From Pelomyxa schiedti (taxonomy: Eukaryota > Protista > Evosea), in the NCBI GenBank assembly GCA_020536535.1, contig JAHLWZ010000423.1, forward strand, positions 186,001-250,000: a stretch of DNA of 64,000 bases. Direction: 5' to 3'. Below, piece by piece: positions 28,901 to 49,746 of the stretch. Each line of letters starts with the position of its first letter. The first letter of the stretch is position 1. The notes under the pieces are model-generated. The model was not told where the DNA came from. It searched no databases and saw nothing but the letters and a program-made list of their open reading frames with translations. The position numbers and the translations under genes are program-made.

Positions 28901-30832
28901 TTTATACGATCAACAGTGAGGCAAGGAGTGTTACCCAAGATTTTACAAGTTGAGCTTGAAACAACTTATTTCATTGAGGATAACTGTTTTCAGAGCCTTC
29001 TTCAGGCACGTGCACATGCAAAAGAGCTTCTTAGTAAAGAAACTGACCCTGGCAAGCGTGCTGTCTATGATGGAAGGCAACTTGCATTGAAGGTCAAAAG
29101 AAGAAAACTTGTACAAACGTTCACTGCAATATACCTCAGATTACTGCTAACTCTGTCTATGGGTTTACTGGAGCCCAACGAGGAAAGCTTCCTTGTACAG
29201 ACATTGCTGCTGGTGTGACTGCTTATGGTCGTGCAATGATTCTCCTAACCAAAAATGTTCGTTATTACAATGAAATTTTGGCTCATTAGTGCAGTTAATT
29301 GAAACAAAGTACTCTGGTTCACGTGTCATATACGGAGACACCGATTCAGGTTTGGCATATTTATTTTTTCTTTTCTTGACAGTGTCCTAGTCATGGTGAT
29401 TTTTGATACTAAGGATATTTCCGAAGCAATGCGATTGGGTATCTCTCCTATCCTCTTTTTCTCATTTATCCTCTTCCAGGAAAGGCAGCAGCAGATGTCA
29501 TCAGTGAGGAATTTCCCAAACCAGTTCGCCTGTTATTTGAGAAAGGTACAAATACAAAAAAATCCATCTCAACTGAAACAAAAAAAAGTGTACTATCCAT
29601 ACTTGCTCATTACCAAGAAACGGTACGCTGGCTTATTATGGACAGACCCCTCACAGCCTGGTAAGATAGACACAAAAGGTCTTGAGGTACGGTGTTCCTC
29701 TCAATTTCCGCATGTAACCACACCATGTAGTCCGTAAGGCGTGACAATTGTCCTCTTGTGAAGCACGTGATGACAACGTGTCTAGAAAAGATTTTAATCG
29801 AACGAAACATTCCCTCTTCTATCGAGTTCGTCAAGGGCATAATCAGCAATTTACTACAGAACAAACTGGACCTCAGTTTACTGGTTATTAGTAAAGCCTT
29901 GTCAAAGTCGAGTTCAGTTTGTTTCCTGACTATATTGTGAAATGCCCAACCTCACTTTCCAGGAATACGCAGCGAAACAGGCACACGTTGAATTAGCCCA
30001 AAAGTTACATGCAAGAGACTCTGGTACCTGACATTTTCTTTCGAATGTGGGTATTAAAACCTCTCTGTAGCCACTGCCCCAGGAGTTGGAGACAGAGTTC
30101 CATATGTAATTGTTAGTGCATTCAAAGGTATGCATTCCCCTACGTTCAAGCAAAAATAGAACGAAAACTAATTAACAATCCAAGGTTCTCGAGCATACGA
30201 AAAAGCTGAAGACCCTCTTTATGCTTTAGAGAAAAATTTACCTCTCGATTATGACTACTATATCCACCAACAATTAGAACTACCAGTCACCAGAATTTTC
30301 AAAAATCTATTACAAGATCCGTCCTCGCTCTTTAGTATGTAGGATTCAATGCTTTACAGTGCTAAGAAAACAAAGAGGGAGAGCACACACGAACAAGGAT
30401 TATTACGACTCCCGTTGCAGAAGTTGGAGGCATCTTGGGTTTTGCCAAAAAAGTACAGTGCTGTGTGGGTTGCAGGTATGCTGATATTTGATAATAACAT
30501 GAGTTTTACTCTCTGGCAGAGCTCTACTCCCATCTAGTGACTCAGCTGCACTATGCACAACATGTGAGACTAAACGAGTCAGTCTCTACAGTAAGCAAGT
30601 AATGACCGTGCGGGAACTGGAGCAGAAATACTGCCGTGTCTGGACACAATGCCAACACTGTATGGGTAGCATGCATCAGCCTATCATATGTGCCAAGTAC
30701 TCTACTCCTTAACCATAAACACTCCTAACGCACATTCCCAGCCGCGACTGTCCCATTTTCTACATGAGGACCAAGGTAAAGAAAGACCTCCAGGAAGCTC
30801 AAGACACCCTTCAACGATTTGACGATTGGTGA
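25981..30832 (+). CDS. POLD1: DNA polymerase delta catalytic subunit
   Basis: Exonuclease motifs PLRILSFDIEC and [12 protein letters not shown]. Polymerase motifs [48 protein letters not shown]-terminal CysA/CysB motifs. Stop TGA at 30830-30832. Confidence 0.98.
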
Positions 30833-30930
30833 TGGAAAATTCCACCAGCCGGGAAAGCTCCTGCCTTTTTAAAACCCAATGGCCCATCCGCCCTTTGTGC
30901 CCACCAAACAACAACCAAAAAAAAGTCCCC

Positions 30931-32939
30931 ATGGACTTGACAAACGACAACTACTACGAAAAGTTGTTTGAGGGCGAATCAACAACATGGCTTGTTGAAG
31001 AAACATCACTCGTGTGGGCCTTACACAGAACATTCGAAGGAAACCTATGCATCAAGCCCACAACTGGTTCTGTGCGTCCCCTTTGTTTTTTTCGACTCTG
31101 GCAAATGGTGTTTCGTTCTCGTGCGTTGTTGTGTTTGTACTCCTGCGCTCCTTGAGTTAAATGTGATGAATTCGGCAGACATTGGTGCTCAATGCCAAGA
31201 CTGGGCAGGCATGTTTAAAATTGTTTGTGCCAACAACATTTGTTTCAGCTGAGCGCATGATTTCTCTTGCAAAGTGGAAAGCTGCTGAGGAGGTTGCAAC
31301 GTTGATACGGGCACTGCCTAGTGAGGAGCGTCCCACATCTATTTTTACTGCACATAAATGCATTGTTGACCCCTTGTCTGTACACATGTTGGATTTCCCT
31401 GGTATGGGAATTCCTTCCTAAAGTGTGAAAAAAGCCCTTTTTATTTGACTTGAATATTTCAAGATATCTCTATTGCATACTCTCGGGCCTATTTCCCCTT
31501 CAGAGCGATCATGAAAATTACCAAAATTCATGAGGATGTAGTCCGCTCCTATGACCCTAGGCTTAATGTCTACAATGTATACGATGATTGGCTTAAGACT
31601 ACCTCACCTCACTCTGCCTTCTTACGGCTTCTCTTGCTTTTGCGTTCAATTCTTGTAGATTATGACCAAGTCAAAGCAATACTTTGCAGCACGAATGCGG
31701 AAACCCTTCCAAATCACATTTGGCCAAGCATGAGCCAGTCTGCATGGATTGAAGTCGAAGCCCGACTGAAGGAGATTGTAATAAACAGGTGGCAGGCAAA
31801 CAATCCTCAACAACTCTCACCAACAGAATCGCAGCTAGGAAGCATTATTTTGGGAACACTGGTATTCATTCTCCTTATTATACCCACCATCTCACTTAGT
31901 TAGCACCCACATCCTGAGATACAAACAAATGTTGACTGGAGAGCACGGGCAATCGAAGCAACAGAATTATCTTCAAATGCTAATAATATATCCCTCTCAC
32001 AGTCAGAGGTGTCAGGGACTGTCACTTACGTAATTCCTGAAAACTTGATAAAGAAATTCGTAAGTCCGGACCACCCAATTCCATGCCTCACAATAATTAG
32101 ATATGCATTGCCGATGTTCACAGTCAAGTTGGTGGCATTTTATACGGGTACTCACCAACTTCCTCTGTGAGAGAAGTACGTTGCATTGTGATTCCCCCTC
32201 AGGTTGAGCTCTTTTCCAAACTGTGCACTCTAATAGTAGAAACAGTGTGGCTGTTCCTCAACAGTATCATTTGCCCGGCTGCAGTCTCACAGCCTCCTAC
32301 GCGAAATGGGGTTGCTTGGCTGGATACACACACAAACAAATCACTCTACTCACGTATCACCACACACTCTAGTAAGCTACGCCAAACTGGCAGAAGAAAA
32401 CGGATTCAACAATCTGAACATCATCACCAACATGCTCACCATAACTTGCTCTATTGTTTCCGGTGGTTGCTTGCTTCTTGCACACTCACCAACTCTCCCT
32501 GGCGTTGAATGGGGACTTACACAAGCAAAATCTTGCAGTGCAACCTGTGGTCTACCCTGTGAAGAATTCAGCCCCTCGTTCTACACCGAGAAGAAACTTG
32601 TAGTAGAAAGCAGCTTCATGGGCTTTTGTGTGTCACTTGTTCTTCTTTACCCTGACTGATTTCGTTGTTTCAGACCTCGTTCCCGACCAGATTCCATGGA
32701 ACTTCAACTTCATGCCAGATAAGTTCAACCTGGCCCTCGACTACACCCTGACAAACCAAAACCCTAAGGATTTCTATCACGAAACCCACCGTCCCATGCA
32801 CTTTTCCCAGTCGAATGGTGACGAGCCATCATCAACAAACACAACATGCACTACAACCAGTGCATCCACTACGTTCTCAACAACATCTGGCAACGAGGAA
32901 GCCTCAGCAGAAGATCTGTCTGAAGACCTCTTCTCTTAG
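30931..32939 (+). CDS. Stand-alone divergent Prp8 C-terminal protein (RNase H-like domain + Jab1/MPN + PROCT tail), ~550 aa, 7 exons
   Basis: HRTFEGNL..KP..G, LAKWKAAEEVATLIRALP.EE.P, DPLSVHMLDFP, NVYDDWLKTTS..SAFLRLLLLLR, HIWP, WRARAI, KKFICIAD, EVRCIVIPPQ, LGWIHTQ, WNFNFM and PKDFYHETHRPMHF all match Prp8 from domain IV onward. Six GT-AG introns keep the frame open. Confidence 0.9.
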
Positions 32940-33006
32940 AAAATAAGCAAACAAAGAGAGAAATACTTTGTGTTTGGTACATTTTGTTCCTTCTGTCTTT
33001 GGCCAT

Positions 33007-35475
33007 TCAGAGGTAATCAACAGGGGATAGAGCCCTCAGACCGGCTACACGTAGTTCCCTGACTCCATTGGCTGAGAACACTCTTGCACTTGTGAAAGTC
33101 TCCAGGCAAAAAACAACCACCATGGTGTGATCAGGAATCGGTGTAGTTCGTTCAGTGCAGCGAAAATCAATAACAACCCAGTCTGTGAAGGGAAAGGCCG
33201 AGTAGGCATCAGATATGAATCTCTTCCTATGCTCCCTCATACCGGCATCTACTCGGAGATGTGCGAATATTACAGAATGAGCTTGTGATGGAGAGAAAGA
33301 AGGAAGAAGAAAGGAACCTGTTCCCTCGCGCAACACTTCAATCCCCCACCTCAGAGAAGTGGTATTGATAAGAAGGTCAATGTAGCCTGTTGCGGCAGCA
33401 CCGCCACAGCCAACGTTGGTGCTGACACTAACATTGGTGGGCAGAAGGCAAGACAGTGTGCGATATAACTCCACCAGGTAGCAACTTTCCAATGGGTACC
33501 CATCCTCTTTTTTTTATTAATCATTAGTGGCTGGTTTTAGGATAATTTCTAATTTTTTCTTACTTGAAGACTTAGATTGTGTATCTGCAAGTACTTTTGG
33601 GTCAAATTCGGCAATGGCATGATGGACTAATTCCCTAAGGCTTGGAGGTGTCACACGTGGTTCCAAATGACGAACGAGCAATTTCTTTTTGTCTGTTTGA
33701 ATTTTAGAGCAACATGCATGACAAGGATTCAGACATGCATATATTCTGAATCAAAGGAGATGAGAAAGCGTAAGCTCCATCATGAATATAAACGACTCCA
33801 ATTTTCACCATACGTCCCAGTACTGCGGGGTCTGCTGTGCGGGAAAAGGTGGATACAGGAGACGGGCTTATGACAAGTTCAGTTAATGTTGCTAGAAGGG
33901 AGTCTTTCTGGACAGAGCTCAGAGAAACGCCATCAAGAATGATCGGAATAGAACGAGAGGACTGGTAATGATTGTGCATTGAAACTGCACTGTTCTGAGT
34001 GATACTCTTGAATGCAATTGTCAACCTGAGTATACATAGTTCATCACCTTCTCGTCAGATACTTTGTCTTGAAATTCGTGGAAGAGGCGGAAGACAATTA
34101 AAGTGGAAAGACCAACATGGAGACCTGTAAATTGAGCAATGCACCGAATGACAGGGTCAGTTAACTGGAAGAGTCCTGCATTCCCAGTGTTCATAGCATG
34201 ACAATATTCAATAAATTCCTCCTGTAGAGAGGAGGTAGGTGGACGTTGGTGAGAAAGAGGCCATGTAGAGATAAGGAGATAACCTCACGAAAGGAGAGAA
34301 ACTCCGCACTTTTCTCACATCCCATAAAGTCGACAGGAGTGGAGCCCTTTGGGGCGTTCACTTTCCCATAGGATGCAAGCAAGATAATTCTATTTCTAGT
34401 TGCACTTCCTTTTGCAGCTTTAACAGTACACCAGAATGAGCTCTCCGGCTCATTGTACGCTTTCTGGGCCTATGGATTCTGAGGAAGGTTGTGATTGAGG
34501 GGAGAAGTTACTTCGTCTATAATTAACGCAAATGGTTCTTGGATATTGAAGAACTTTCCAATTGGCATGTTGGAATTGGACAGGAATTTATCAAGGGGTG
34601 TATCCGCTTTCCCAGCCAATGAAATGACAGACACCTGTGTATGGAAGGGAAATTTAAGGTGCTCACAACTCAGTCAGATGAGTCAGAGGCATGCCTTCCA
34701 GCCTTTATTATGGAGATAGGCTTCAAAAACGTCTCCCAGACTCGTTTTGCCCGAATACGGTGGTGCGCGAACCAAAACTACAGGCCTGTGCTCCATGAAA
34801 CTGTACAACTCTTGGCAAGTACTCTCACGGAATGTGAGGGGTGAAGCCGCGCCCAACCCGTCTGTCTGGAAAGTGATTGTGCACTTTTCAGTTGTTTTCG
34901 CTCTTGTCTTGATATCTTTCCTGGGAGAAATTGGAGCTGTAATGGAGACCAATGTTAGGTTTACAAGAGGTAACGGGATAGAAACCAGGTATAGAGCACT
35001 TCTCTGAAAGGCCAAGAGCTCTCAGTGCTCCTTGAACGCTGCCTACAAGTTCCAATTTTGAGATAACTTGTTCAGGATCCATTCCTGCTAAAAGAGCATC
35101 CACAGACTGAAAGGTTTCTTCCGAGAGAGTTTTCATCATGTCCAGTACGGTCTTTTTTAACCTATTGCTCTTCTCCATGGTCTCCCTAACTCTAAGCAGC
35201 TCTTCTTTAAGTTGCAGGGCCGTCTCCACTACACCACCTGCCAAACTGGGGTCCTTCTGGGCCCTCTGCGCTGCCGCAAAAGCACGATTGAGAAGAGTCA
35301 TCAAGATTAGAGACTCGGTGGTGATCAACGGTAGCATCCTCATAATGTCCAGATCGTGGGGCGGTTCCACAAATTCAAGCACGGCGCCGAGTTTCTCGCG
35401 AATTGGCACATTGGGCATGTACTGCTCGTTTGGGCGGTGCGATTGTAAGGGTACGCTACTAGCTGCTGTCGGCAT
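33007..35475 (-). CDS. Crinkler/RHS-type protein: helical N-terminal header + P-loop NTPase + PD-(D/E)XK restriction-endonuclease-fold domain
   Basis: Walker A VLVRAPPYSGKTSL and Walker B FALIIDE(AQ). C-terminal ESCYLVELYR...GYIDLLIN...WGIEVLREG...EHRKRF...DWVVIDFR is the typical CR-REase signature. Confidence 0.75.
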
Positions 35476-35836: not shown

Positions 35837-37555
35837 TTAGACATCCAGTACAGAGAGAACACAAAACAAACGAAAATAAAATATTGAGTTGTTGGTGGAT
35901 GTAGTTAGAATAAGTTGGGTAATGTGATAACATAAGGCGTCGCTTGTTATATGTACTGGAGAAATGAGGGACGGCATACCAGGATGAGGAGGGAGCACTC
36001 GTCCATGACGTAATACACCATTTACATCATATCTTGGAGGCTGTGCAATGGATGGCCGCAGTACGGCAGCTGCAGCTGCTGCCCGCAGATACGGCGGTAC
36101 ACCTGCTCCCTGGGGCATTACATTTGCAGGAGTTGAGAGCAACGATTGAGGCTGTGGTGGTGGTGGGATGGGAATGAAAGGCTTTGACCCAAGTGGAGCG
36201 GGAGGGAGTTTTGCCCTGGCGGCAGACACTGCCGCTAACGCAGGTGTGGGTGGTATAAATGGAAGGTTTCCTTGTGGGTGAGGGAGAAGTCGTGGGAAAG
36301 GAATTTGAGGGGACCCTAAAGGACTAGGAGGTGGAATTGATGGAATAAGCGGTGCTCCACGGCCTGGGGAAGGGGTAAGTGTGGGCAGGGAAAGAGTGGC
36401 AGTTGGCAGAGGCCCTCGCCCTGAGAGTGGAAATTTGCACTGCATTTGAAATGAACTGTTGTTGACAAGTCCTGGTGCATTACCCAGGAGAGGCAACAAT
36501 GACCATGATGGCATGGATCCGGCTTGTAGTAACTGTGCTGATGGCGATGTGAATGGTCTTATATGGTTGATTGGCCCAGGGAGAAGGGAAGAGGAGTTGG
36601 AGAGAAGTTGGAGTGTGTTGAGAGCCCCAGGTGGAGGGGGTAAAAACCTGGATGGTGGAGGGACTGGAATTGGAATGAGTGGTCTTTTTAGAGTGGAAGG
36701 AATAAGGGGTGGTTGCTGTGGAGATGGAATAAGTGGTGGGCTAGGGACCAATGAACCGCTTTTCAACTTTGAATTCAGTAGGGCACTTGGTTTTAGGGGA
36801 ATTGCTGGCTTTGATGAAGATACGAGTTGAAGTGGCTGCTGGCAAATTGGCAATGATTGAAGTGGGTTGAGCTTGGCAATTGGGAGAATTCTATTCGGTT
36901 CGTCTAGAATCCCTATCAAACAGTGAATGGGTGGTAGAGTGCAACTTAAAGTAAAGGTACACAGACCTAATTGAGGTTGTCTGAGAAGTAACGGTGATTG
37001 GGGCACCTGACTGTGGTCCTGGTACACCTGTTGCAGAAGAGGAGGGGCACAAAGAGGTACCATAGGCGAAACAGAGCCTTGCATGCGCTGCTGCCGCTGC
37101 CGCTGTTGTTGCAGAACATATTGCAATTCGCTTTGGTTATGCAACAACAGCTGCTGCCTATCCAACTCAGCGGCGGCGCTCAAATAGTCCTCCCACTGCT
37201 GCCACTGCGCCGCGTACTCCGATTCCCTCTGCTGCTGTTGCAATGCCGCGTTCGCCGCCACAACTGCTGCCGCCGCCGCCGCTGCTTCCGAGGTTTGAAT
37301 TTGCATTTGCATTTGCATTTGCTGTTGTCGCTGGTGCGGTGGTTGAGCGGCGGTCAAGATCTCGTCACGACGCTGCAGTAATGCCGCGGATTGTTTGTTT
37401 TGGTGGTGTTGCTGCTGCAGCTGTTCTAAGATCTCAGCGGGAATGTAGCTCGAGTGCTGGGCATCTACGTCGAGAAGTTGTTGGTAGTATGCGAGTATGG
37501 CTTCGTCGTATGTTTGTGCTTGTTGCTGTTGCTGGTACTCGTATGACCCCAGCAT
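35837..37555 (-). CDS. Hypothetical Gln-rich / Pro-rich low-complexity protein
   Basis: 572-codon ORF starting with ATG; poly-Q/A N-terminus and Pro-rich C-terminus. May contain in-frame introns. Confidence 0.6.
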   Translation of the reverse strand: MLGSYEYQQQQQAQTYDEAILAYYQQLLDVDAQHSSYIPAEILEQLQQQHHQNKQSAALLQRRDEILTAAQPPHQRQQQMQMQMQIQTSEAAAAAAAVVAANAALQQQQRESEYAAQWQQWEDYLSAAAELDRQQLLLHNQSELQYVLQQQRQRQQRMQGSVSPMVPLCAPPLLQQVYQDHSQVPQSPLLLRQPQLGLCTFTLSCTLPPIHCLIGILDEPNRILPIAKLNPLQSLPICQQPLQLVSSSKPAIPLKPSALLNSKLKSGSLVPSPPLIPSPQQPPLIPSTLKRPLIPIPVPPPSRFLPPPPGALNTLQLLSNSSSLLPGPINHIRPFTSPSAQLLQAGSMPSWSLLPLLGNAPGLVNNSSFQMQCKFPLSGRGPLPTATLSLPTLTPSPGRGAPLIPSIPPPSPLGSPQIPFPRLLPHPQGNLPFIPPTPALAAVSAARAKLPPAPLGSKPFIPIPPPPQPQSLLSTPANVMPQGAGVPPYLRAAAAAAVLRPSIAQPPRYDVNGVLRHGRVLPPHPGMPSLISPVHITSDALCYHITQLILTTSTNNSIFYFRLFCVLSVLDV

Positions 37556-37790: not shown

Positions 37791-40700
37791 ATGCAGGAGC
37801 CGAGGCAGGGTACCGGTGACAGTGGTGCAACGACGACCATACCGCAAGATCCAAGCAAGACGACGGCGGTGGGTGGTACTACGACCGGCCAAGCCAATGA
37901 TCTGGCCGTGTCGTCATCGCCTCCTTCTTCTTCGCCGTCTTCTACAACGGCTAGTTCTTCCTCTGTTTTCTCTGTTGGTGGCGGCGGCGTTGTTTCGGCG
38001 GCGACCTCGTCTTCATCTTTGTCGGCGTCGGGAGACCGGCGAGAGGGTGGAGCCACTACGAGCGTAGCTCAGACGGTGTCGGTGGTGCCCGTTGAACAAT
38101 CGCCTGCGGCTGTAGAACAACCGGCTCAACTAATGGAAGAGGATGCGGTTGTGGTGTCACACTGGGGTTTTTATCCCTCCCCCTCTTCGATGTGTCTTGT
38201 CTTTCGGCCTTCTTTCCACTGCTCGCCCTCCCCTTCCTGCTACCTTTTGTCCCTTTTGCTATTTGGCTTCTGATTCGTCCCATTCAGAGCAAAAATTTAA
38301 TGAAATGGAGTCAAGGGTTGTTACAGCAGAGGGGGAAAGAGATGACGCACTTGCACAGCTAGTCGTAGCACGGACTGAGTCTCAACAACACAGTTTGCCC
38401 ATTTTGTTATATTTTGTTTTGTTTTACTATGTAAAGGTTCCATGCTTTTGGCGTGCCAAAAAGCTTTGGAAGCACAGAAACAAGAAACTGAAAAATTGGC
38501 ACACTCACTTAATTTGATCACCAAGGTAATTCTTCCCAAGTAAACACCAACACAAAAAGAACTTAATACCACAACAGGAAAAAGAATCCCAAAACCAAGA
38601 ACTGAAACTGCTCACCCACACTATCTCTAGGAAAGACAGTCAGCTTGAAAGCAATCGAGGTCCACTCAAAGGAATAAAATAATTAAACATTAACTCTGGG
38701 GAAAAAAAAGAGGAATTGAAGCTTGCAGACGAACGCATTGCAGCTCTCACAAGCACAAAAACACAGCTTGAGTCCAAATACATGCAACTGGAATCCTCAA
38801 GCTCAACCTTGAAGGTTCAGCTACTGTTGTTTTATACTTACTGTGTAACACTAAGTAGCTTAAATTGGATCATCTTGAAAACGAGGCGAAGATATTAACA
38901 CAAGAAATTGAGGCCTCTCAAAAACAGATGGAGTCCAAATCCCAGGAACTACTTGAAGAAAAAAAATTACGGGTGAGTCATCTCCACTTGTACAATAGTT
39001 TAACTCTTACTACAGGCAGGTCAAGTAGCGCAACTGGAAGCAAAACTTAGACATCTCGTGGAGCAAAAAGAATTCATTGAAAGTGAACTCAAAGCGACTA
39101 AGGTATCCATTCGCTTTTGCAGGCCTCCAGTAATTCTTTCCAAACAGAATCACTCACAAAAGCTGCAAGCCTCAACAGACAAATATGAAGCACAGATTCT
39201 ACAACTGAATAATGACATGGAAGCATTGAAACGACAATATGATGGGGAATTGATTGCTTCAAACAAGAAATATGATATAGTGAAGGTTCCTTTGTTACCT
39301 ACGAGGCCTTTCTTGTTGATTACTGCAAATAGGAACAAAGAGACACATGCCTCCAAAAAATTTCACACCTTAATGAACAAATCAGTGCATTAACATCACT
39401 TCTGGAGCAAGCACGTAACGAACACAATGCTGCTGTTTCCAAGGTGGAACTTTCAACACTCCTAGATTTACTTTTTACTTTGGCATTAGGCTGAAGAAGC
39501 TCTGGAGAAGTTGCACAAAGAAAACGAATCTCTGAAGAAAAAGATAGAAACCCCAAAAGATGTGCTTGATCCAATTGAATTTTCTGTTAATTGGCAAGAG
39601 GTTTTGTTTCTCCCCCCATACCCCATACTGGACTCTAATACCAACACAGATGTCCGGAGCCTCAATTGACGATTGGCGTGTCTTCTCTATGAATCTGGTA
39701 AGTGCAATCCAAAAATGTTTTCTCTAATTTTTTATTATCAGCAATCAAAGTACGAGGAATCTGTAAGGCTGTTTCATCGGGAAAAACAACTCCGTAACAA
39801 TGCCGAAATATGTCTTAACTTTTTCTGCAAAGTACCCCCACGTTACTTGAACTTTATCCAATTTCTCCAAAGGAACTTGAAACCAATGCACCTTCTTTGT
39901 CAGACAAATTATTGGAAAATAAGGAACTCAAGGAAAAAGTCTCAGACCTCACTGAAGCCCAGGCCCTCTCTGTGTCCAACTTAAGTGACCTGCAACAACA
40001 ACTTTCCAGGAAGGAATTAGATTTTGTGGCATTAAAATCAGGTGTGTTCCATACAACCGTCCTCCCTAACAAAGAATTGCAGTAAACAGAGATCTGAGTG
40101 ACCAAATTGCACACCTCCTAGAAACATGCACCGAGAAGGTAAATTCTATGAGTACAACAAACACGAGCAGCCAAATCAGCTTCAGTGATATCCAGGTAAG
40201 CAATAGTTTACTTGATGACCTTATACCCAATTTCCAGAGTCTCCAAGAGAAAAATCAACAATTACTATTGACTGTCCACAGACTTACACAAGAGAAGGAA
40301 ACTATTCTTCAGAAACTCCCTACAGACAAGCAAACTGTCAGAACTTTAGCTTCTAGTATTTTTGTTAAATATCTTTCAGGACAGCGTGAAGGAGCTAGCT
40401 AAAATGCGCGAAGAAATGGAGAAGGCACTTCAGAGGGAAGACACTCTTAGAAAGCAATGCCAAATATTTAAAGATCTCTACGAGACTCTACTTTTGGAAC
40501 ACAAAAAATGCTCTTTGGTATAGCCTGAGCTTATCTTCCTTATTACCTATTTTTCTGTAGGTCATGCCATCTGAACCATGTATCCAACAGTCTGTATATG
40601 ATACACTCAAGAAAGACTTTGATGAATACAGGGACCATTCAACAACTACACTCCAACAAATGAAAAAGGAGTGTGAGGATTTACAGCAACTTCTCAATTC

Positions 40701-43700
40701 CGCCAACCTGGACCTGACCAAAGTGCACACACAAGTGGACTTGTATAGTGGTAATTCTTTTACTGCTCAAATACCTGTACCTCATTTCTTTTAGTCAGGA
40801 ACGCACATTTGAAGGATGAGAACGACAAAATGAAATCTGAAGTAGAAGAACTCAGAGCACAAAACACAAAGCTCACAGAATCATTGGAAGCCCTTTCCAA
40901 GAAGTAACTGGATTAATCAATACATTACTAAATCCACATAGGAGTCATGAGCGTGAAGCTGAGTCTGTGTATATTCGACAAGAAGTTAAGTCTCTTAAAG
41001 TAATCAACACAAGCTTACTACGGGAAAAAGCTGACTTGAAAGTACTCCCGTACTGATCACCTTTTCTTCTACTCATTCACAATCAGGAGAGCTGTCAACA
41101 GTGGCAGACGGAGTCGGAACAGTTGAGATCAGAGATATCTCGGCTCTCGGCTTCTTTTTCTTCACTCACGTCATCTCGTGCAGCTGCAGATGCTGTTGCT
41201 ATTGCAGAGCGTAAACGCTTAGAGAATGATTTAGAGAAGGCCAATAAAAAAATGTGAGCACTTCAGCCCTTCCTGAGCACTAATTCTTTATTAGCATAGA
41301 GTACCAGAGGCATCTAGAGGAATCACGCAGCACCACAGAAGCCACACTTGGTACTCTTACAAGGCAGTTGCAAGAAAAAACAAGCTCATTGGCCGCAACT
41401 CAATCTGAATTGGAAATGAAGGAAGAACAACTTAAGAAAATGCTGGATAGCCAAAAAACATTTGAAGCGCGTTTCCAATCAGTTCAACAGGAACTTGAAG
41501 CCTGCAAAAAGACCACTCCTCACGATCCCCTGCAACTTGCCCTTCTTAAAAATGAAATTGCGAACTGGAAAGATTTTGCAGAACGGGTCACTTCCCCCTT
41601 AATAATTGTCTCACTTAACCTCAAATAGGAGAAGGCTATCTCCAAAAGCAATAAAGATATGGCAGAATCAGCAGAGAAAAGGAGAGCGGAAGTTGCACAA
41701 CTCCTTCAGAAGCAACAAGTCGACAGCAACTTACAACTTACAACATACCAATCCAAGATAGCTGAAGTATTATTTCTCAATCTCATGTGGTACTTATAAA
41801 TAAAAGCTGGAAGAGCGTAGTAAAAAAAGGGAGGAAGAGACCCAGTCATACATAGAGGAAAAAAAAGCTCTTCAGAGCAGGGTTGACGTATGTGCGCCTA
41901 CACACCACGCTTTTGATTTATCGCAGTTAGGCACTCCAATCAAATGTACATAGCCTTGAATCAGAAATAAAACAGTTTCAAAGTCAGCTAGCTAACAAAT
42001 CAGAAGCAGAGAAATTATTACAAGGTACACCTTCTGCTGTGTTTTCGGGCTAACATTCATCCAGTACAATTACATGATATGGAGTTAGCCAAGAATAAGC
42101 TGCAGATATCATATGAAGACGAAGTTAAAGCACGGGGAAGAGATCTTGAGAACATATCTAAGATACGTGCTGATCTGGCACATTTCACTGTATCTCTTTT
42201 TGGGTAGTAAAAAGAAGTAACGCACATTGCAGAGCTTGTATGAGTCTCTACACACACAGGCCGACACATGGAGAGAACAAGAACTAGATTACCAAAAGAG
42301 GATCGATACCCTTACATCGATGTACTCACAATTACTTCCCTCAGTTTCCTCTCGGAGATTAAGCTTTTTTTCAGAACAGAGACTCCAGCGTATCACAAAG
42401 ACACAGTTCAAATGGATCAGATAACAAAAGACTTTAGCATGAAAGGCGTACCCTCTTCCATTGTACGACATTGATGTGACGATTTTAGCTTATCACATGT
42501 TAGGCTGGGGTGATGACACCTCGTACCAATGAAGAATTACAAGCAGTGGTATGCACGAGATTCGCCTTATTCAATCTAATGACCATTACCTTCAGGTTGA
42601 ATGGCTACGAAAAGAAAAATGTCTTTCTGATTGCCAAAAAGAAGAACTGGAACAAAGAAACAAAAGGTATTATTCTTTGAGGCAAGTAATGACATTTCCC
42701 CTCCAACCAAACCTACAGGCTCCAATCTGATATTTCAATCCATCTCAGTGAAGTATCCAAGCTAAAAGAAACTACTCGTCAATTGGAATCTAAATTAAAG
42801 GTATTGTTTAGCTTTCCTACAGTAGTTAAGCTGAGTTCTTTACTCGTTTTCCCAGCTTTTCCCTTCTGTCGAGGAATTTCAGGAAATGAAAAACTCTTTA
42901 CAACAAGTAGAACTATTCAAGGAGAGTAATGTCACACTGAGAAAGGGCAAACAGTCCTTAGAGGAAGAAATCATCCTACTGAAAAGTATTCATTTTTCTT
43001 GTAATTCTGTTTTCTGAGATTCACTAGACGAGATCGCTGCCCTCAAGTGTGAAAAAGATTCATTCGATAAGCTTTCCCTGAACTTTGAAGCGCAAGTGCG
43101 GGATTGGAAGACCCGTTGCCATGCATATATTGTATGCAGACTCCTGCACTATTGCACTAAAAAAAAACAGGACAAAATGAAACCCATTGAAGAAAACAAC
43201 GCCTCTCTTTTAGAAGAGATAGCTAAATTAAAAGAACAGTGCAGTCAGAGTCGCGACCGAATATCGACCTTGGAAGTGGAAAGTTCTGCTTCAAAATCGG
43301 TATTGAAAAAGTATAGGTTTCCACGGTTTCTTAGCCGATCTTTATAGCAACTTCTGCAAGCGCAAGAAAAACTACGGCAGCAAAGTGAAGCACGGGCTCG
43401 TCCTACAAGTCTTGTCCGCCCAAGGCCTACCCCGGGTATGATAGCCACAAGGAATTATTACAGAGTAACACTTCCCCAGATATGAAGTCCCTAGAAAATG
43501 AGAAGGCTACCTTGGCGAGTGAAAGAGCTGCCTTTGCAAAGGAAAAAGCTGAGATGGAGCGCACAAACAATAAGATCGTACAGGTAAACTAACATTTAAT
43601 ACTGTACGTCCCGTTTCCCTCACATACACAAAGGATGCCGGTCAGGCACTGCTTAGCCACAAAGCCAGGTGGAACAAACTACAGAGTCTTGTACACGATA

Positions 43701-45062
43701 TTGCCAATGCAATACACGTAATTTCTTCCTAAATTTGATGTTTTGATCTCCTTAAAAACCATTAGGGAAAGCAAGCCATTGTCCAGTTATTGACTGACCC
43801 TCCTCCCAAATCCATGGAAAAAAGCCAAGATATCTTGAGCTTCTTTACTTGGCTTTCTACGTTTGTCTCTCAAGTCCTTATTCCATCTCTTCCTACTGGG
43901 GATACGTTGGGTGCACCTTTGGCACGTGGTGACTCACAACAAAAACTGGAAGTTGAGAGTTCGTCGGAACCATCAACCACGAGAATTGAAGCTCCAACAA
44001 CGTCAGCCCCACCTGAACCTTCAACACAGAAGTCTACTATTGTAAATCTGAAAAAAGTAACCAACAAGCCCGCATCTGATCCATCAATGCCCCCTCCCAG
44101 TACAGTAGATATTCAAAAGCGGCCTGTACCTATCTCTACACCAGCACCCACTCCGAGGATAGCAAAGCCAACAACCAGTACTCCTAATACCCATGTTCCA
44201 AATGTTCCAGCCACAGACAACATGCCAACAGCAGTTGAAATGAATTATGGAGTACCAGGTGAGCCAACTGCCCTGATCTCAACTGGGCACCTCTCCACTA
44301 TCCCCCCTGTTATGGATACAGATGTAACCTCGGGTCACGTTCCCGCCTTAATTCCTGTTGACGCACTCCCTACAGAGACTGCTAATCTTATGCCTCCTTC
44401 AAATACAGAGGCAGCAGTCCCGCCCCCATCTGTACCTATTACCATAGCCTCTCCAGTACCCGTACTCACCATTCCCACAACCATGTCTCCTTCCCTTCTC
44501 CCACCCACACCAACCATTTGCACAACATCCCTTTCTGCATCTACCAACCTACCGTCCCCTCTGGAATCCTCCTTGGAGTCATCTACCACAAACGCGATTG
44601 CTCCACAGGTACTCGAACATGGTGTGGCTTCTCCATTATCGGGTGAATTCAGCAAAGGCCCACAGATCCCGGAAGAAGAAACTGACTTGATAGAGGGAAA
44701 TGAAGATAGTGAAGCTGCACTCCCAAGTCATTCAGTTTCAGTGCAACTTTTCAAAACTAACCAAAGTTACAACAGAAAGAACGCGTGAAGAAGCTGGCCT
44801 AGACCAAGAAGTGTCAAAATCGAAACGCAAGTGCACAACCGCTCAACCAGTAACACCCCCACAGTCGGGAATAGCATCACCCACACCAGAGGAGAAGTCG
44901 GGAATTTCATCTGTAGAAGATGCAGAACTATTTCAGTTACCTCCGGAAACCACCAACCCCCCAGACACAGAACTACCAACAAACGAGCCCGAGGAAGGAC
45001 AAACACCCACGGAGCCAAGTGACGCAAAGACTGAAGACACTGAGGAGTATGATTATTTCTGA
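37791..45062 (+). CDS. TPR: Nuclear-basket nucleoporin TPR/Mlp1-like coiled-coil protein (many exons)
   Basis: Long coiled coil carrying TPR signature segments ISFSDIQSLQEKNQQLL, YEDEVKARGRD, LQAVVEWLRKEK and VELFKESNVTLRK, followed by a Pro/Thr/acidic disordered tail. Confidence 0.8.
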
Positions 45063-45277
45063 TTCCACTTTTTACTAACCCTTTTACAGTAGTTGAAGGC
45101 AATGTAAAGTGATGAATTGGCTGGATTGAAGAGGACTTTTTTTTGTATACAAAGCGCCAAGGGACGGATTGTTACTACACCTTGTGGCCATATTTTCGGT
45201 GGTAAATTCTGTCGTGATACAGAAAGCCACAACAAAATTTTTATTTTAAACGTATCACTCTCTAGCCTAAAACAAAA

Positions 45278-47060
45278 ATGTGGCGAAACGGTGCCGTTTC
45301 CCCAAGTGATGAGTCGCAAACAGCCAAGAGCGCAACCGAAACCACCGCGTCACCAGTCCTGCAACAACAGCCTCAGCCTCAATCGCCGTTACCAGGGGGC
45401 GAAACGGGAGGAGGGACTACTCCTCCGACTACGTTTAGCTGTCCAATATGCTCGAGGAAGTTTAACTCGGAGGCGGCGGTGATGAGGCACGTGGACGACT
45501 GCCTTACGGAGCAGTCGATGATCGGCGAGGGGGGGCAAACCAACGAGCCCAGGGTCGGTACCCCTCCTTTGACCAGTTGGAGCGCCGGCTCTCGCGCCCG
45601 CGACGAAGTGAGTTCCAGTACTGGGTCGGAGGTTTCTGGGGAACCTTCATTTAGGGAAATTGGCAGGAAGTTGGGTTTTGGCTGGGGGTCAAAGGGGCCA
45701 AGTGGCAGGGAGACCTTCAGTGGGAGTAATTGGGAAGAGCAAGAGTCTGGAGACCCTCGTTTGAAACTGGATTGGTCTACTCCCGGCCCGCTTAAGCCGC
45801 TACCTCCTGGTGACTCTGGATTCGATTCGGACAGCAGTGAAGATGAAGGAGACGTTTTTGATGCAATATCACCAGTACATGTGGAGAACAACGGGGCTAT
45901 CAAGTTCAAGTGTCCATATTGTATGTTGACCTGTCTGTATCCACTCGTCTACCGCCTGACAAATACTTAGATGGGTGCCTGAGGGAACTTGAAGCAGCCC
46001 GTCTCCTAAGGCACATCATGAGACGGCACACTAGGGGCTCACAGGCATACGCCTGTCCTATATGTGACTATGGTAAAGTGAGTTAAGCCTCCACAGCCAA
46101 AATCGTTTTTAATAAGTAAAAAACAAGATTGAGAGATACCGCGTAGACTCGAGCACAAACCTACTCTTCCACATCACTAGTGCTCACGCGTCTGAACTGA
46201 TGCCGCCAAAGAGGAATGCCCTAGCCCCAGAGCAATTTTTACCCGCATCTTCCAATACATTACCTCCACAGTCGCCACACAGCCCATACACCTACAGACC
46301 CTCCTCATACACACACGCACTACCAACATTGAGCCCCTTCCCTGCAGTAGACCCACCCAAGTTATCATACTCCTCTTCGCCACAACCCTCACTAACGTCA
46401 CACCTCCCCCCGTATCCTGCCCATCTCATCACTCCCAGCCTGGGTGCTCCTCAACTCCCACTTCCTCAGACTCCTGATAGTGGAAGCCTCAGTAGTCGTA
46501 TGGAGCATTTATTGGCCTTACAGAGGAAAATATCGCCCCAGGGTCCTGAACTTCATAGCCCAAGTACAACTGTCCCCGAGCCAATTCCCGAGACATGGCG
46601 TGCTGGCATTCGCCCAAGTTTGCAAGAATTTATCGAACCTAGCACTTCCAGCTGGAAGCTGCCGCCAGGGACAGCTTCCTTATCAAATCCTCTCAATCCA
46701 ATGAAGCCGTATGCGCCCGCACACACGAATCCAGGTTGTTTTTACACTGCAATTCGCAACTGACCATTCCACGTAGATCTTGGCACTGAGGAGGAAGATC
46801 TATACAGCAGTGAGCCCAGTGAACCAAGTGGCAGTAAACAAGACATGTTTGCCGGGTTTACATACAAGCCCAGCACGGAAAAACGCAGCACAGCTGAAAG
46901 CCTTCGTCTTTCTGAGATGCTGCGTCGTTCACCTCCCATCTATGGACCGAGTGTGATACAAGCAGATGAACCCACCCGCCAAGATCTCGTCACTGCCCTC
47001 CATTTGTTTATCAAAGATGGCCCAGATCCACCCTCTTCTGTAATCGACATTCTTGTATAG
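45278..47060 (+). CDS. Zinc-finger protein (UBZ4-like finger plus Di19-like C2H2 fingers)
   Basis: FSCPICSRKFNSEAAVMRHVDDCL; FKCPY.GC...LLRHIMRRH...YACPIC...NLLFHITSAH. Confidence 0.65.
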
Positions 47061-47179
47061 TACCAACATTATGAAGTTGGAACAGAAAATATCTGCACTG
47101 CTAATCACATGACACCTTAATTTGCCGGACCTTTTTTTTTGACCGAAACACAAAAAAACAATCAAAGTCGAAACAAATC

Positions 47180-49746
47180 ATGGCCAGCACAGAGCACGTA
47201 CCGACAACAGCGGAGCCATCTGCGACAGCGACAGGAGGCTCTGCGTCACACACGACAGCACCACCGGCTCATAATCCTTGGGGAAAGAGCACTGCGGCTG
47301 CACCCCAGCAGCAGCCGCAACCACAACAACGTGCGAAGAAGTCCGAAAAAGGGAGGCGCGAGGAGCACCAGCCGTCTCTGGCACATATAATGAATGAGGA
47401 AAAGACCCGGAAGCACCAAGAGGACACAGATCGAGCTTTGGCTGTGGCGTTGAGTGAGGCTCTCAATTCGGGGCCACCACCGCAATCAACACCCGGCGGT
47501 GCACACAAAAAAAGGTCGAAAGGCGGCCGGAAAACCCCAGAACACGTTGCATCAAACACGCCTACTCGCGATCATCCCACAAGTGATGCGCCTGCCACTG
47601 TCAACACACAACCCTCTAGTGTGGCACATGAGCCAGTGGCAGTGCCCAAGGCAGACCCAACTACAAAAGAACCGGCTGTAGTGTATGTCTATCCTTACAG
47701 GAGTGATTTCGGTAACTATGTTCCAGAGACAAAGTTAGTGATGAAGACTTAGCAAGAAAACTAAGTGAACAAGAGGACTATTTGTATGCCCTTCGTCTTC
47801 AGGAGTCCCTAGATAATCCCCCCGCCGATAGTGAAGTTAGCCAACGTAACGAGACAGGTAATAGCCACAATTTCTTTGATTTTATTTACATCTTCAGTTG
47901 TCACGGTTCATAAAACAAGGGAGACACCCTCCCACCACGCACGGGCCGCGCCACCATTAAAACACGAGGCCTCTGATTCGGAAGACAGTGATGATGGATT
48001 CACTGTGGTACAGAAGCCTGGTAAAAAGAGTTTGGCGACAAAGCATGACCCCGTTCTCTGTGGGAAGAAGAATGCCAAACGATTACAGGAAGTGTGGTGC
48101 CAGTTTTTACACCTAATTACTCAATCAAGCACAGGTTTTGGATGGGGATATGAGGAATCTATCGATTGATAACCCCACATTCAATTTATTGGTTAAGCAC
48201 GCCAAAAGAGAAGAGAGTAGAAGGTATGTCTTGTGCCTGTTTCAGTAGAAACCGATGCCCATCAACCTAGGATTCGCGTCAAAGGAAAGGAGGATACAAC
48301 CACTTCTGAGCAAGTACTTGATACGCAGACAAGATTAATTATTTTGAAAGTAAGTGTAGAAGGAGCAACCAACTCCCTAACGATCCTTTGTAGCTTATTA
48401 ACAAAGATCTCATTTCTGACATTAGTGGAGTTCTAAGTACCGGGAAAGAAGCGAGTGTCTACCATGCTAAACGGGGCAGGTGACAAGTATCTCAAATTTG
48501 CCGTTTGTTCACATGAAAGCAGTTATACCGATGCTAACTCGCCACCACAATCCTGTACTGAGTATGCAATCAAAGTTTTCCGGACAATCAATGAATACAA
48601 ACATCGCGATGTATACCTTGACGGACAATTCTTGCAGCAGTTTATTGCTTCAAAGCGCAAGCCCAAGAAGTGCCTCAAACTATGGGCACAAAAGGAACTC
48701 CAGAACTTGCGAAGGTATACCATCATCACCTCGTATTACGCGTCACCATAGATCAGAATTCACCGAGCTGGTCTCCCTTGCCCTCAGCCTGTTGGTCTTT
48801 TTTCACATGTACTGGTCATGCAGTTCATAGGCGCGAATGGATACCCAGCCCCCACTCTCAATGTATCCACCTTTCTTTAGCACAATTCACTAAGTTGCTC
48901 AGGATGCGGATATACCACCGGAATCCCTTGGCACTCTTTACTTACAATGCGCTGATTTGATGCGCAAACTATTTCAGAAATGCAATTTAGTTCATGCCGA
49001 TTTTTCTCCGTTTAATATACTGTACATTTGCTTATCTTTTGTAATTAGTTCTAACACTTGAAAGCTACTACGAAGATCAAATGTATGTCATTGACGTGGC
49101 TCAGGCAGTCCTCAATGATCACAGAAACGCGATGGATTTTCTTCGCCGTATGCTGCCCTTTTCTGTGGTTTGTCCCAACTAATGGTAATCCAGGGGATTG
49201 CGAAAATATAACTCGTTTCTTTAAAGGCCGAGGTCAAACACAGCAGTAAGGAAAAAGCTTTCACTTAAACTTCATAGGTGTGCCAAATGTTGCTAGTGTG
49301 CACAGGCTTTTCGATTTTATTTGCAATCCAAGTATTCCCGAGGAACTTGTAAGTGAGAAATTACAAGAGCTCACTTCCACACCTGACACCACTCCATCTG
49401 AGGTATTACCCCCCCTTGAAACACTTACACCCAACACTCAAACAGGTTGATGACGCTGTGTTCTTGCGTTCATACATGCCTCGCTCCCTGTAAGAACCCA
49501 CTTCACAGTATTGGTGGTCTAACGTAACTTAGAGCCGATGTTAAAGACCCCGCACAGGCCATCGAAGGTGTTCAGCAAGGTGACCCTGATTCCATCTCCC
49601 ACCTCACTGTTAGTGGGATAACCCCAGGGATGGTCTTGGGTATTGACGAAGAAGACGACGAGGAAGATGAAGATGAAGAGGAGGAGGAAGACGAGGCAGA
49701 AGGAGGGGAAAGCATTTTCGTCAAGGAGAATACACAACATTCTTAA
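47180..49746 (+). CDS. RIOK3: RIO-family atypical kinase, RIOK3-like
   Basis: Kinase motifs STGKEASVY, YAIKVF, WAQKELQNL, LVHADFSPFNIL, VIDVAQAV. RIO3-type N-terminal motifs SLAHIMNEE, TKHDPVLCGKKNA and TFNLLVKHAKREE. Confidence 0.8.

Follow-up and report, generated by a model that had tools for sequence, protein, structure and literature searches.

A separately encoded Prp8 C-terminal module in Pelomyxa schiedti, apparently kept by selection and proposed to regulate Brr2 in trans

Prp8 is regarded as an indivisible, near-invariant, single-copy scaffold. In the stretch of 64,000 nucleotides of the Pelomyxa schiedti genome analysed here (the window), a gene at positions 30931-32939 codes only for the RNase H-like, Jab1/MPN and tail regions of Prp8, which raises the question of whether it is one half of a split Prp8, a decaying duplicate, an error of assembly or a paralogue with a function of its own. 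An earlier note on this DNA had preferred a paralogue acting in trans on Brr2 or the spliceosome to a Prp8 that is split or trans-spliced.

Exons were joined from the window sequence and searched singly with Pfam and sequence searches, after which the deposited protein was used. The gene, on the plus strand, consists of seven exons and six GT..AG introns of 41-107 nt, and its 1668 nt of coding sequence (555 aa and a stop) showed neither an internal stop nor a frameshift across the 555 codons. The joined exons matched at 100%, over residues 1-555, the P. schiedti protein KAH3762961.1, which had been deposited under the plain name Prp8, in agreement with the intact seven-exon gene of about 550 aa that had first been read from the sequence. 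Pfam matches, taken exon by exon, covered positions 5-46, 50-121 and 123-230 of PRP8_domainIV and positions 2-60 and 62-108 of PROCT, in register. The introns had been called tiny; they are short rather than tiny, and the data at hand show no tie between the short Prp8 gene and short introns.

[quoted passage not shown] Exon 2 (31179-31401) contributes aa 48-121 of the same domain, including W80, V115 and the loop of aa 63-77, which is diverged, and exon 3 (31464-31861), beyond intron 2 (31402-31463, 62 nt, phase 1), contributes its helical C-terminal part (aa 122-254). Directly 3' of intron 3 (31862-31903, 42 nt, phase 0) lies a deletion in the interdomain linker; exon 4 (31904-32059) codes for the shortened linker and the start of Jab1/MPN, including N301 and K305. 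The Jab1/MPN core lies in exon 5 (32101-32202) and in exon 6 (32246-32627), which also holds the first half of PROCT, while exon 7 (32674-32939) holds the RP13 region (P498, F501, E504, H506, R507, F511), a disordered spacer, the EDLF-type tail and the stop. Introns 2, 3, 4 (32060-32100, 41 nt, phase 0) and 6 (32628-32673, 46 nt, phase 1) are likewise at positions common to full PRP8. Intron 5 (32203-32245, 43 nt, phase 0) is not in full PRP8, and the deposited protein has the same exon join at this point.

The upstream neighbour is POLD1 (DNA_pol_B, zf-C4pol), whose TGA at 30830-30832 leaves, as had been noted, a gap of 98 bp (30833-30930, plus strand) before the ATG of the short gene. When full-length Prp8 was used in a tblastn search over the 64-kb window, no Prp8 match besides the short gene was obtained, so the view that the C-terminal regions stand as their own gene, with no N-terminal part in cis, was upheld. 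A misassembly between 30832 and 30931 had been considered; it is unlikely, because contigs re-assembled from two runs covered 29400-34400 in one piece and with 0 differences, the two runs being probably from the source sample and hence a check on the assembly rather than independent data.

Transcription was borne out by RNA, since the junction of intron 6 was found spliced, in the gene's own sense, in one single-cell RNA run (X3). Other RNA contigs reached only the 5' end of the short gene, so that RNA coverage comprises its two ends. The short Prp8 gene is thus transcribed, and one of its junctions spliced, as seen in a single run from a single study, a result that concerns neither level nor full length. 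At the boundary with POLD1, the stop codon of the latter overlaps an ATG at 30832 (TGATG); from this ATG, 33 codons stay open in the frame of the short gene. One POLD1 RNA contig terminated at 30924 within an A run, which might represent a site of polyadenylation or else internal priming; a second contig covered 30786-30950, from the end of POLD1 into the start codon of the short gene. The TGATG overlap possibly reflects read-through with stop-restart translation, or chance; an in-frame fusion or read-through protein with POLD1 was discarded as the frames differ across the 98 bp. Downstream, a convergent spliced gene lies on the minus strand at 32995-35475, with two CT..AC joints in RNA and a Walker A/B-like P-loop region giving just a faint match to STAND NTPases. 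The RNA contig of this gene is continuous with the final exon of the short Prp8 gene, which suggests that the 3' ends of the two genes overlap. Further along, at 35837-37555 on the minus strand, there is an open frame of 572 aa that is Gln/Pro-rich, of low complexity and without a Pfam match.

A complete, conserved PRP8 was found elsewhere in the genome, on the minus strand of contig C79 at about 40036-47950. In the genome contigs searched, the PROCN, U5-binding and U6-binding domains occur as a single copy, on C79 only, whereas domain IV and PROCT occur at two loci, C79 and the short gene, and no further one; a second N-terminal Prp8 half was not found in the assembly. A split or trans-spliced Prp8, which the earlier note had kept in play, is therefore rejected. 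That the short gene starts and stops at natural domain borders would suit half of a split protein, or an artefact of assembly or contamination, but the complete PRP8 with its single-copy N-terminal domains, the contiguity of the locus in re-assembled contigs, the introns placed as in the host gene and the host Prp8 as nearest sequence make this reading extremely improbable. Nor is the short gene a Prp8 orthologue in the sense of the U5 snRNP scaffold, which is a single chain of 2300-2400 aa bearing PRO8NT, PROCN, RT/RRM, U5-binding and U6-binding domains, against 555 aa here, those domains being confined to C79.

All five introns of the matching full-PRP8 region were present in the short gene at identical positions and phases, the short gene having one more. 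Because these five positions and phases are common to both genes, the short gene is, as judged from gene structure, a DNA-level partial duplicate of the host PRP8 and hence a paralogue, and a retrocopy, which would lack the parental introns, is excluded. Host full Prp8 was the closest sequence to the short copy (43%; 42.5% in the gene-pair comparison). In a tree from which other long branches were left out the two grouped together with weak support (68), and with the other long-branched sequences kept the placement of the short copy was not settled.

The short and full genes differ at a pS of 0.785 (saturated) and a pN of 0.39, with 42.5% identity. In simulated neutral decay to the same identity about 17 stops accumulated and 0/200 copies were free of stops; the share of conservative changes was 0.375 in the short copy and at most 0.31 in the simulations. 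Because stops are lacking, pN is below pS at saturation and conservative changes are in excess, sequence comparison indicates that the short copy is kept by purifying selection, a statement about past selection drawn from one genome; a very recent loss of function may be compatible with such single-genome data. A pseudogene or decaying duplicate, for which a dN/dS near 1 had been named as the sign, was rejected on these pN and pS values, the intact frame and the spliced junction.

Constraint is much relaxed in comparison with full Prp8, since the end branch of the short copy (4.79) is about 25-30 times longer than that of the host full Prp8 (0.18). Among near-invariant columns, 129/230 were kept and 44% were changed. 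The short copy is, as had been observed, far more diverged than Prp8 orthologues and yet free of stops (about 40% identity, against 60-85% among orthologues). 'Targeted remodelling' was dropped as a description of the overall pattern, the patchiness of conservation not being significant (permutation p 0.11). The very long branch and the altered near-invariant columns could also be expected of a once-useful duplicate now relaxed, or re-used outside splicing, for example as a Jab1/MPN pseudo-enzyme scaffold; its transcripts could partly be POLD1 read-through, given that RNA contigs lie at the two gene ends only and one crosses from the end of POLD1 to the start codon. The 555 codons without stop or frameshift, the excess of conservative changes, the six intact introns, one of them not in the parent, and the retention of the Brr2-contact residues and terminal EDLF speak against it, and we consider this reading improbable.

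The AlphaFold model (pLDDT 85.5, pTM 0.56) contains both Prp8 folds and does not define their relative placement; as its input was an alignment of canonical Prp8, it is biased toward the canonical fold. The RNase H-like fold (aa 1-253) superposed with Z 33-34 and an rmsd of 1.7-1.9 A over 251 residues, and the Jab1/MPN fold (aa 263-517) superposed on Brr2-bound human Jab1 with Z 35 and an rmsd of 1.6 A over 247 residues. The linker between the two is 12 aa long, where about 58 aa are usual, owing to a 46-aa deletion that starts directly after intron 3. In 118/118 other measurable sequences the linker has at least 55 aa, and in nearly all of them 55-62.

Within the RNase H-like domain, the positions of human D1781, D1782, T1864 and Q1894, which we take to be the RNase H metal site of Prp8, read E23, E24, A105 and R135. 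The loop at aa 63-77 keeps 2/14 conserved residues, and the beta-finger core is half conserved. The core of the contact with Aar2 is formed by human W1839 and V1874 (PMC9629490), and the short copy retains both residues, at W80 and V115. For the Brr2 interface and the residues underlying it, which were named from the yeast structure (PMC3677097), yeast residues were mapped via human numbering and the offset stated in that paper. Eleven of the twelve interface or scaffold residues are identical to the host full Prp8, including N301 and K305, which correspond to the Brr2 contacts N2188 and K2192 of yeast. Against a background of 56-62% at conserved columns this retention gives a binomial p of 0.01-0.03, in a small and non-independent sample, as the residues neighbour one another and several are structural. 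The retinitis pigmentosa (RP13) positions P2301, F2304, H2309, R2310 and F2314 are kept in 5/5 cases. The tail is acidic and ends in EDLF, the commonest Prp8 ending among the homologues, and the spacer before it has drifted, being longer, Thr/Ser-rich and disordered. At the level of sequence, then, the surface for Brr2 binding (11/12 residues) and the inhibitory tail (EDLF) are intact.

By a Sec63 domain search, the host genome holds one Brr2 (C793), in which both FN3 aspartate positions are preserved, and a single ASCC3-like helicase (C306), the latter probably divided between contigs (C306:1-5100 and C2372:1-1629). No extra Brr2 paralogue was detected in it by this search, and the genome has one Aar2. 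The earlier paralogue reading stands as regards origin, selection and transcription. TSSC4 was not detected in the host, in a search run without a positive control.

The large domain and the N-terminus of Prp8 provide binding to U5/U6 snRNA and Snu114 and a nuclear import signal. Having neither, the short copy would build no U5 snRNP and do no spliceosome scaffolding, since without the large domain it should be unable to bind U5/U6 snRNA. We propose instead that its Jab1 surface binds the single host Brr2 in competition with full Prp8, and that the acidic EDLF tail enters the Brr2 RNA tunnel, so that unassembled or recycled Brr2 would stay inhibited. The RNase H half could bind Aar2 too, which would provide a possible exchange switch, and the role would be that of a placeholder, buffer or brake for Brr2 in U5 snRNP assembly or recycling, not that of a catalytic spliceosome part. 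The 12-aa linker would lock both domains close together, as fits the loss of a need for the domain movements of the splicing cycle; it could also make the RNase H domain clash and hinder Brr2 binding, a kind of clash that occurs in the Aar2-bound state (PMC3677097). Published work has shown that Jab1 on its own binds Brr2 and, when it carries the tail, acts as a Brr2 inhibitor in vitro (PMC8934646), and that the RNase H domain on its own inhibits U4/U6 unwinding (PMC4045393) and binds Aar2 (PMC9629490). On whether the short copy is a free protein that keeps the single Brr2 bound and inhibited away from the spliceosome, a proposal drawn here from sequence and model, we see the balance as about even.

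The same anatomy might be thought to suit an accessory factor on assembled spliceosomes, such as the minor spliceosome, or one that has to handle the RNase H beta-finger or Brr2 in trans at some stage. The genome of P. schiedti contains about 90 minor introns (PMC10639083), conservation extends to half of the beta-finger core, and RNase H and Jab1 each form a unit that is structurally independent of the other (PMC4045393). However, minor spliceosome structures (7dvq, 8y6o) contain ordinary full Prp8, both sites are already occupied in cis within the spliceosome, the metal-site residues are changed and the 555-aa sequence has no basic nuclear import motif, so that we regard such a role as quite improbable.

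Compared with the C-terminus of Prp8/PRPF8 (PF12134, PF08084; human about 1761-2335), the short copy has the same two folds in the same order, the same tail motif and likewise the contact residues for Brr2 and Aar2. It differs in being its own gene without N-terminal, RT, linker or endonuclease domains, in its interdomain linker of 12 instead of 55-62 aa and in the changed metal-site positions. Its borders are nearly those of the Prp8 C-terminal fragments made in the laboratory (3SBG; Aar2-RNase H-Jab1, 4ILG; Brr2-Jab1, 4BGD, 4KIT and 7OS2), which fold alone and in vitro can bind Brr2 and Aar2, or regulate them, in trans; these are engineered, whereas the short copy is a natural gene, apparently under selection. 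The job proposed here, to inhibit Brr2 by binding it or to keep its place while U5 snRNP is assembled and recycled, resembles that of the assembly placeholders TSSC4 and Aar2 (PMC8934646, PMC3677097). These two are not homologous to the short copy and bind Prp8 and Brr2, whereas the short copy consists of copied Prp8 surfaces.

Diverged Prp8 genes with the RNase H domain only were found in two strains of Anaeramoeba flamelloides (KAJ3431121.1, KAJ6235765.1) and in metagenomic eukaryotes (P0128, P0033). Further RNase H-only listings were L024:8001-8798, L025:8001-8774, L031:110-1045, P0055, P0291 and P0122, with Rubus argutus among the sources. Like the short copy, the RNase H-only copies start at the domain IV border, and where tested no other Prp8 parts were found within 8 kb of them; unlike it, they lack Jab1, the tail and the Aar2-binding Trp, and none is nearer to the short copy than to ordinary Prp8. 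In two predicted gene models the Prp8 RNase H domain has a fusion partner, a ubiquitin-like domain in P0056 and leucine-rich repeats in P0034, an arrangement suggestive of integrated bait domains. Spin-off of Prp8 domains thus appears to recur, and the form with RNase H, Jab1 and tail and a cut linker seems so far to occur only here.

These fusions bear on another reading, in which the short copy is a decoy or bait, a soluble Prp8 C-terminal copy that would absorb a Prp8-directed protein of a virus or symbiont, or signal its presence, and would retain the native surfaces no further than mimicry requires. It is precisely the Jab1 region of Prp8 (aa 2094-2335) that enterovirus 3Dpol binds (PMC4072778), Prp8 RNase H domains recur on their own or fused to ubiquitin-like or LRR partners as integrated baits do, and the short copy evolves fast. 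On the other hand, it is a single copy with no family expansion and no attached signalling or effector domain, and its identity to Prp8 is just 42.5% where close tracking of the target would be expected. We know of no agent of Pelomyxa that targets Prp8. The retained Brr2 surface would fit action in trans, and the same data would fit a decoy, a role that we hold to be unlikely, though it is the main rival to the regulation of Brr2.

No orthologue of the short copy was found by phmmer with exon 3 over 1.84 billion representatives, and neither a whole-protein word search (8000 candidates of 0.55-1.75 times its length) nor the ESM Atlas gave a protein nearer to the short copy than to ordinary Prp8. 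The matches of 500-650 aa that were examined are conserved Prp8 fragments or single exons with the full linker and were set aside as orthologues; diverged orthologues could be hidden among matches of this size. Neither the short copy nor the RNase H-only Prp8 genes were described in the literature searched, most subscription journals lying outside that search.

Taken together, the short Prp8 gene is real, selected and, within the literature searched, undescribed, in one species and with a function that is proposed. In the fuller reading, the C-terminal part of Prp8, encoded naturally as a gene of its own, would regulate Brr2 in trans and exchange places with Aar2. It would then be a control factor of a new kind for U5 snRNP assembly or splicing, derived from the most conserved protein of the spliceosome, and an instance of a broader tendency among protists, so far undescribed, to release the Prp8 RNase H domain as a separate or fused unit. 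This reading seems to us plausible, at somewhat less than an even chance. To our knowledge, in-trans effects of RNase H/Jab1 on Brr2 are known from engineered fragments only. A gene that has these borders in nature and persisted while divergence ran to saturation would demonstrate that the module can be used alone by cells. The short copy would also serve as a natural mutational scan, in which the Brr2 face, the Trp and Val of the Aar2 interface and the tail end were kept and the linker, the metal site and loop 63-77 were dropped, and this pattern may mark the surfaces that work outside the catalytic cycle, the retinitis pigmentosa residues included.
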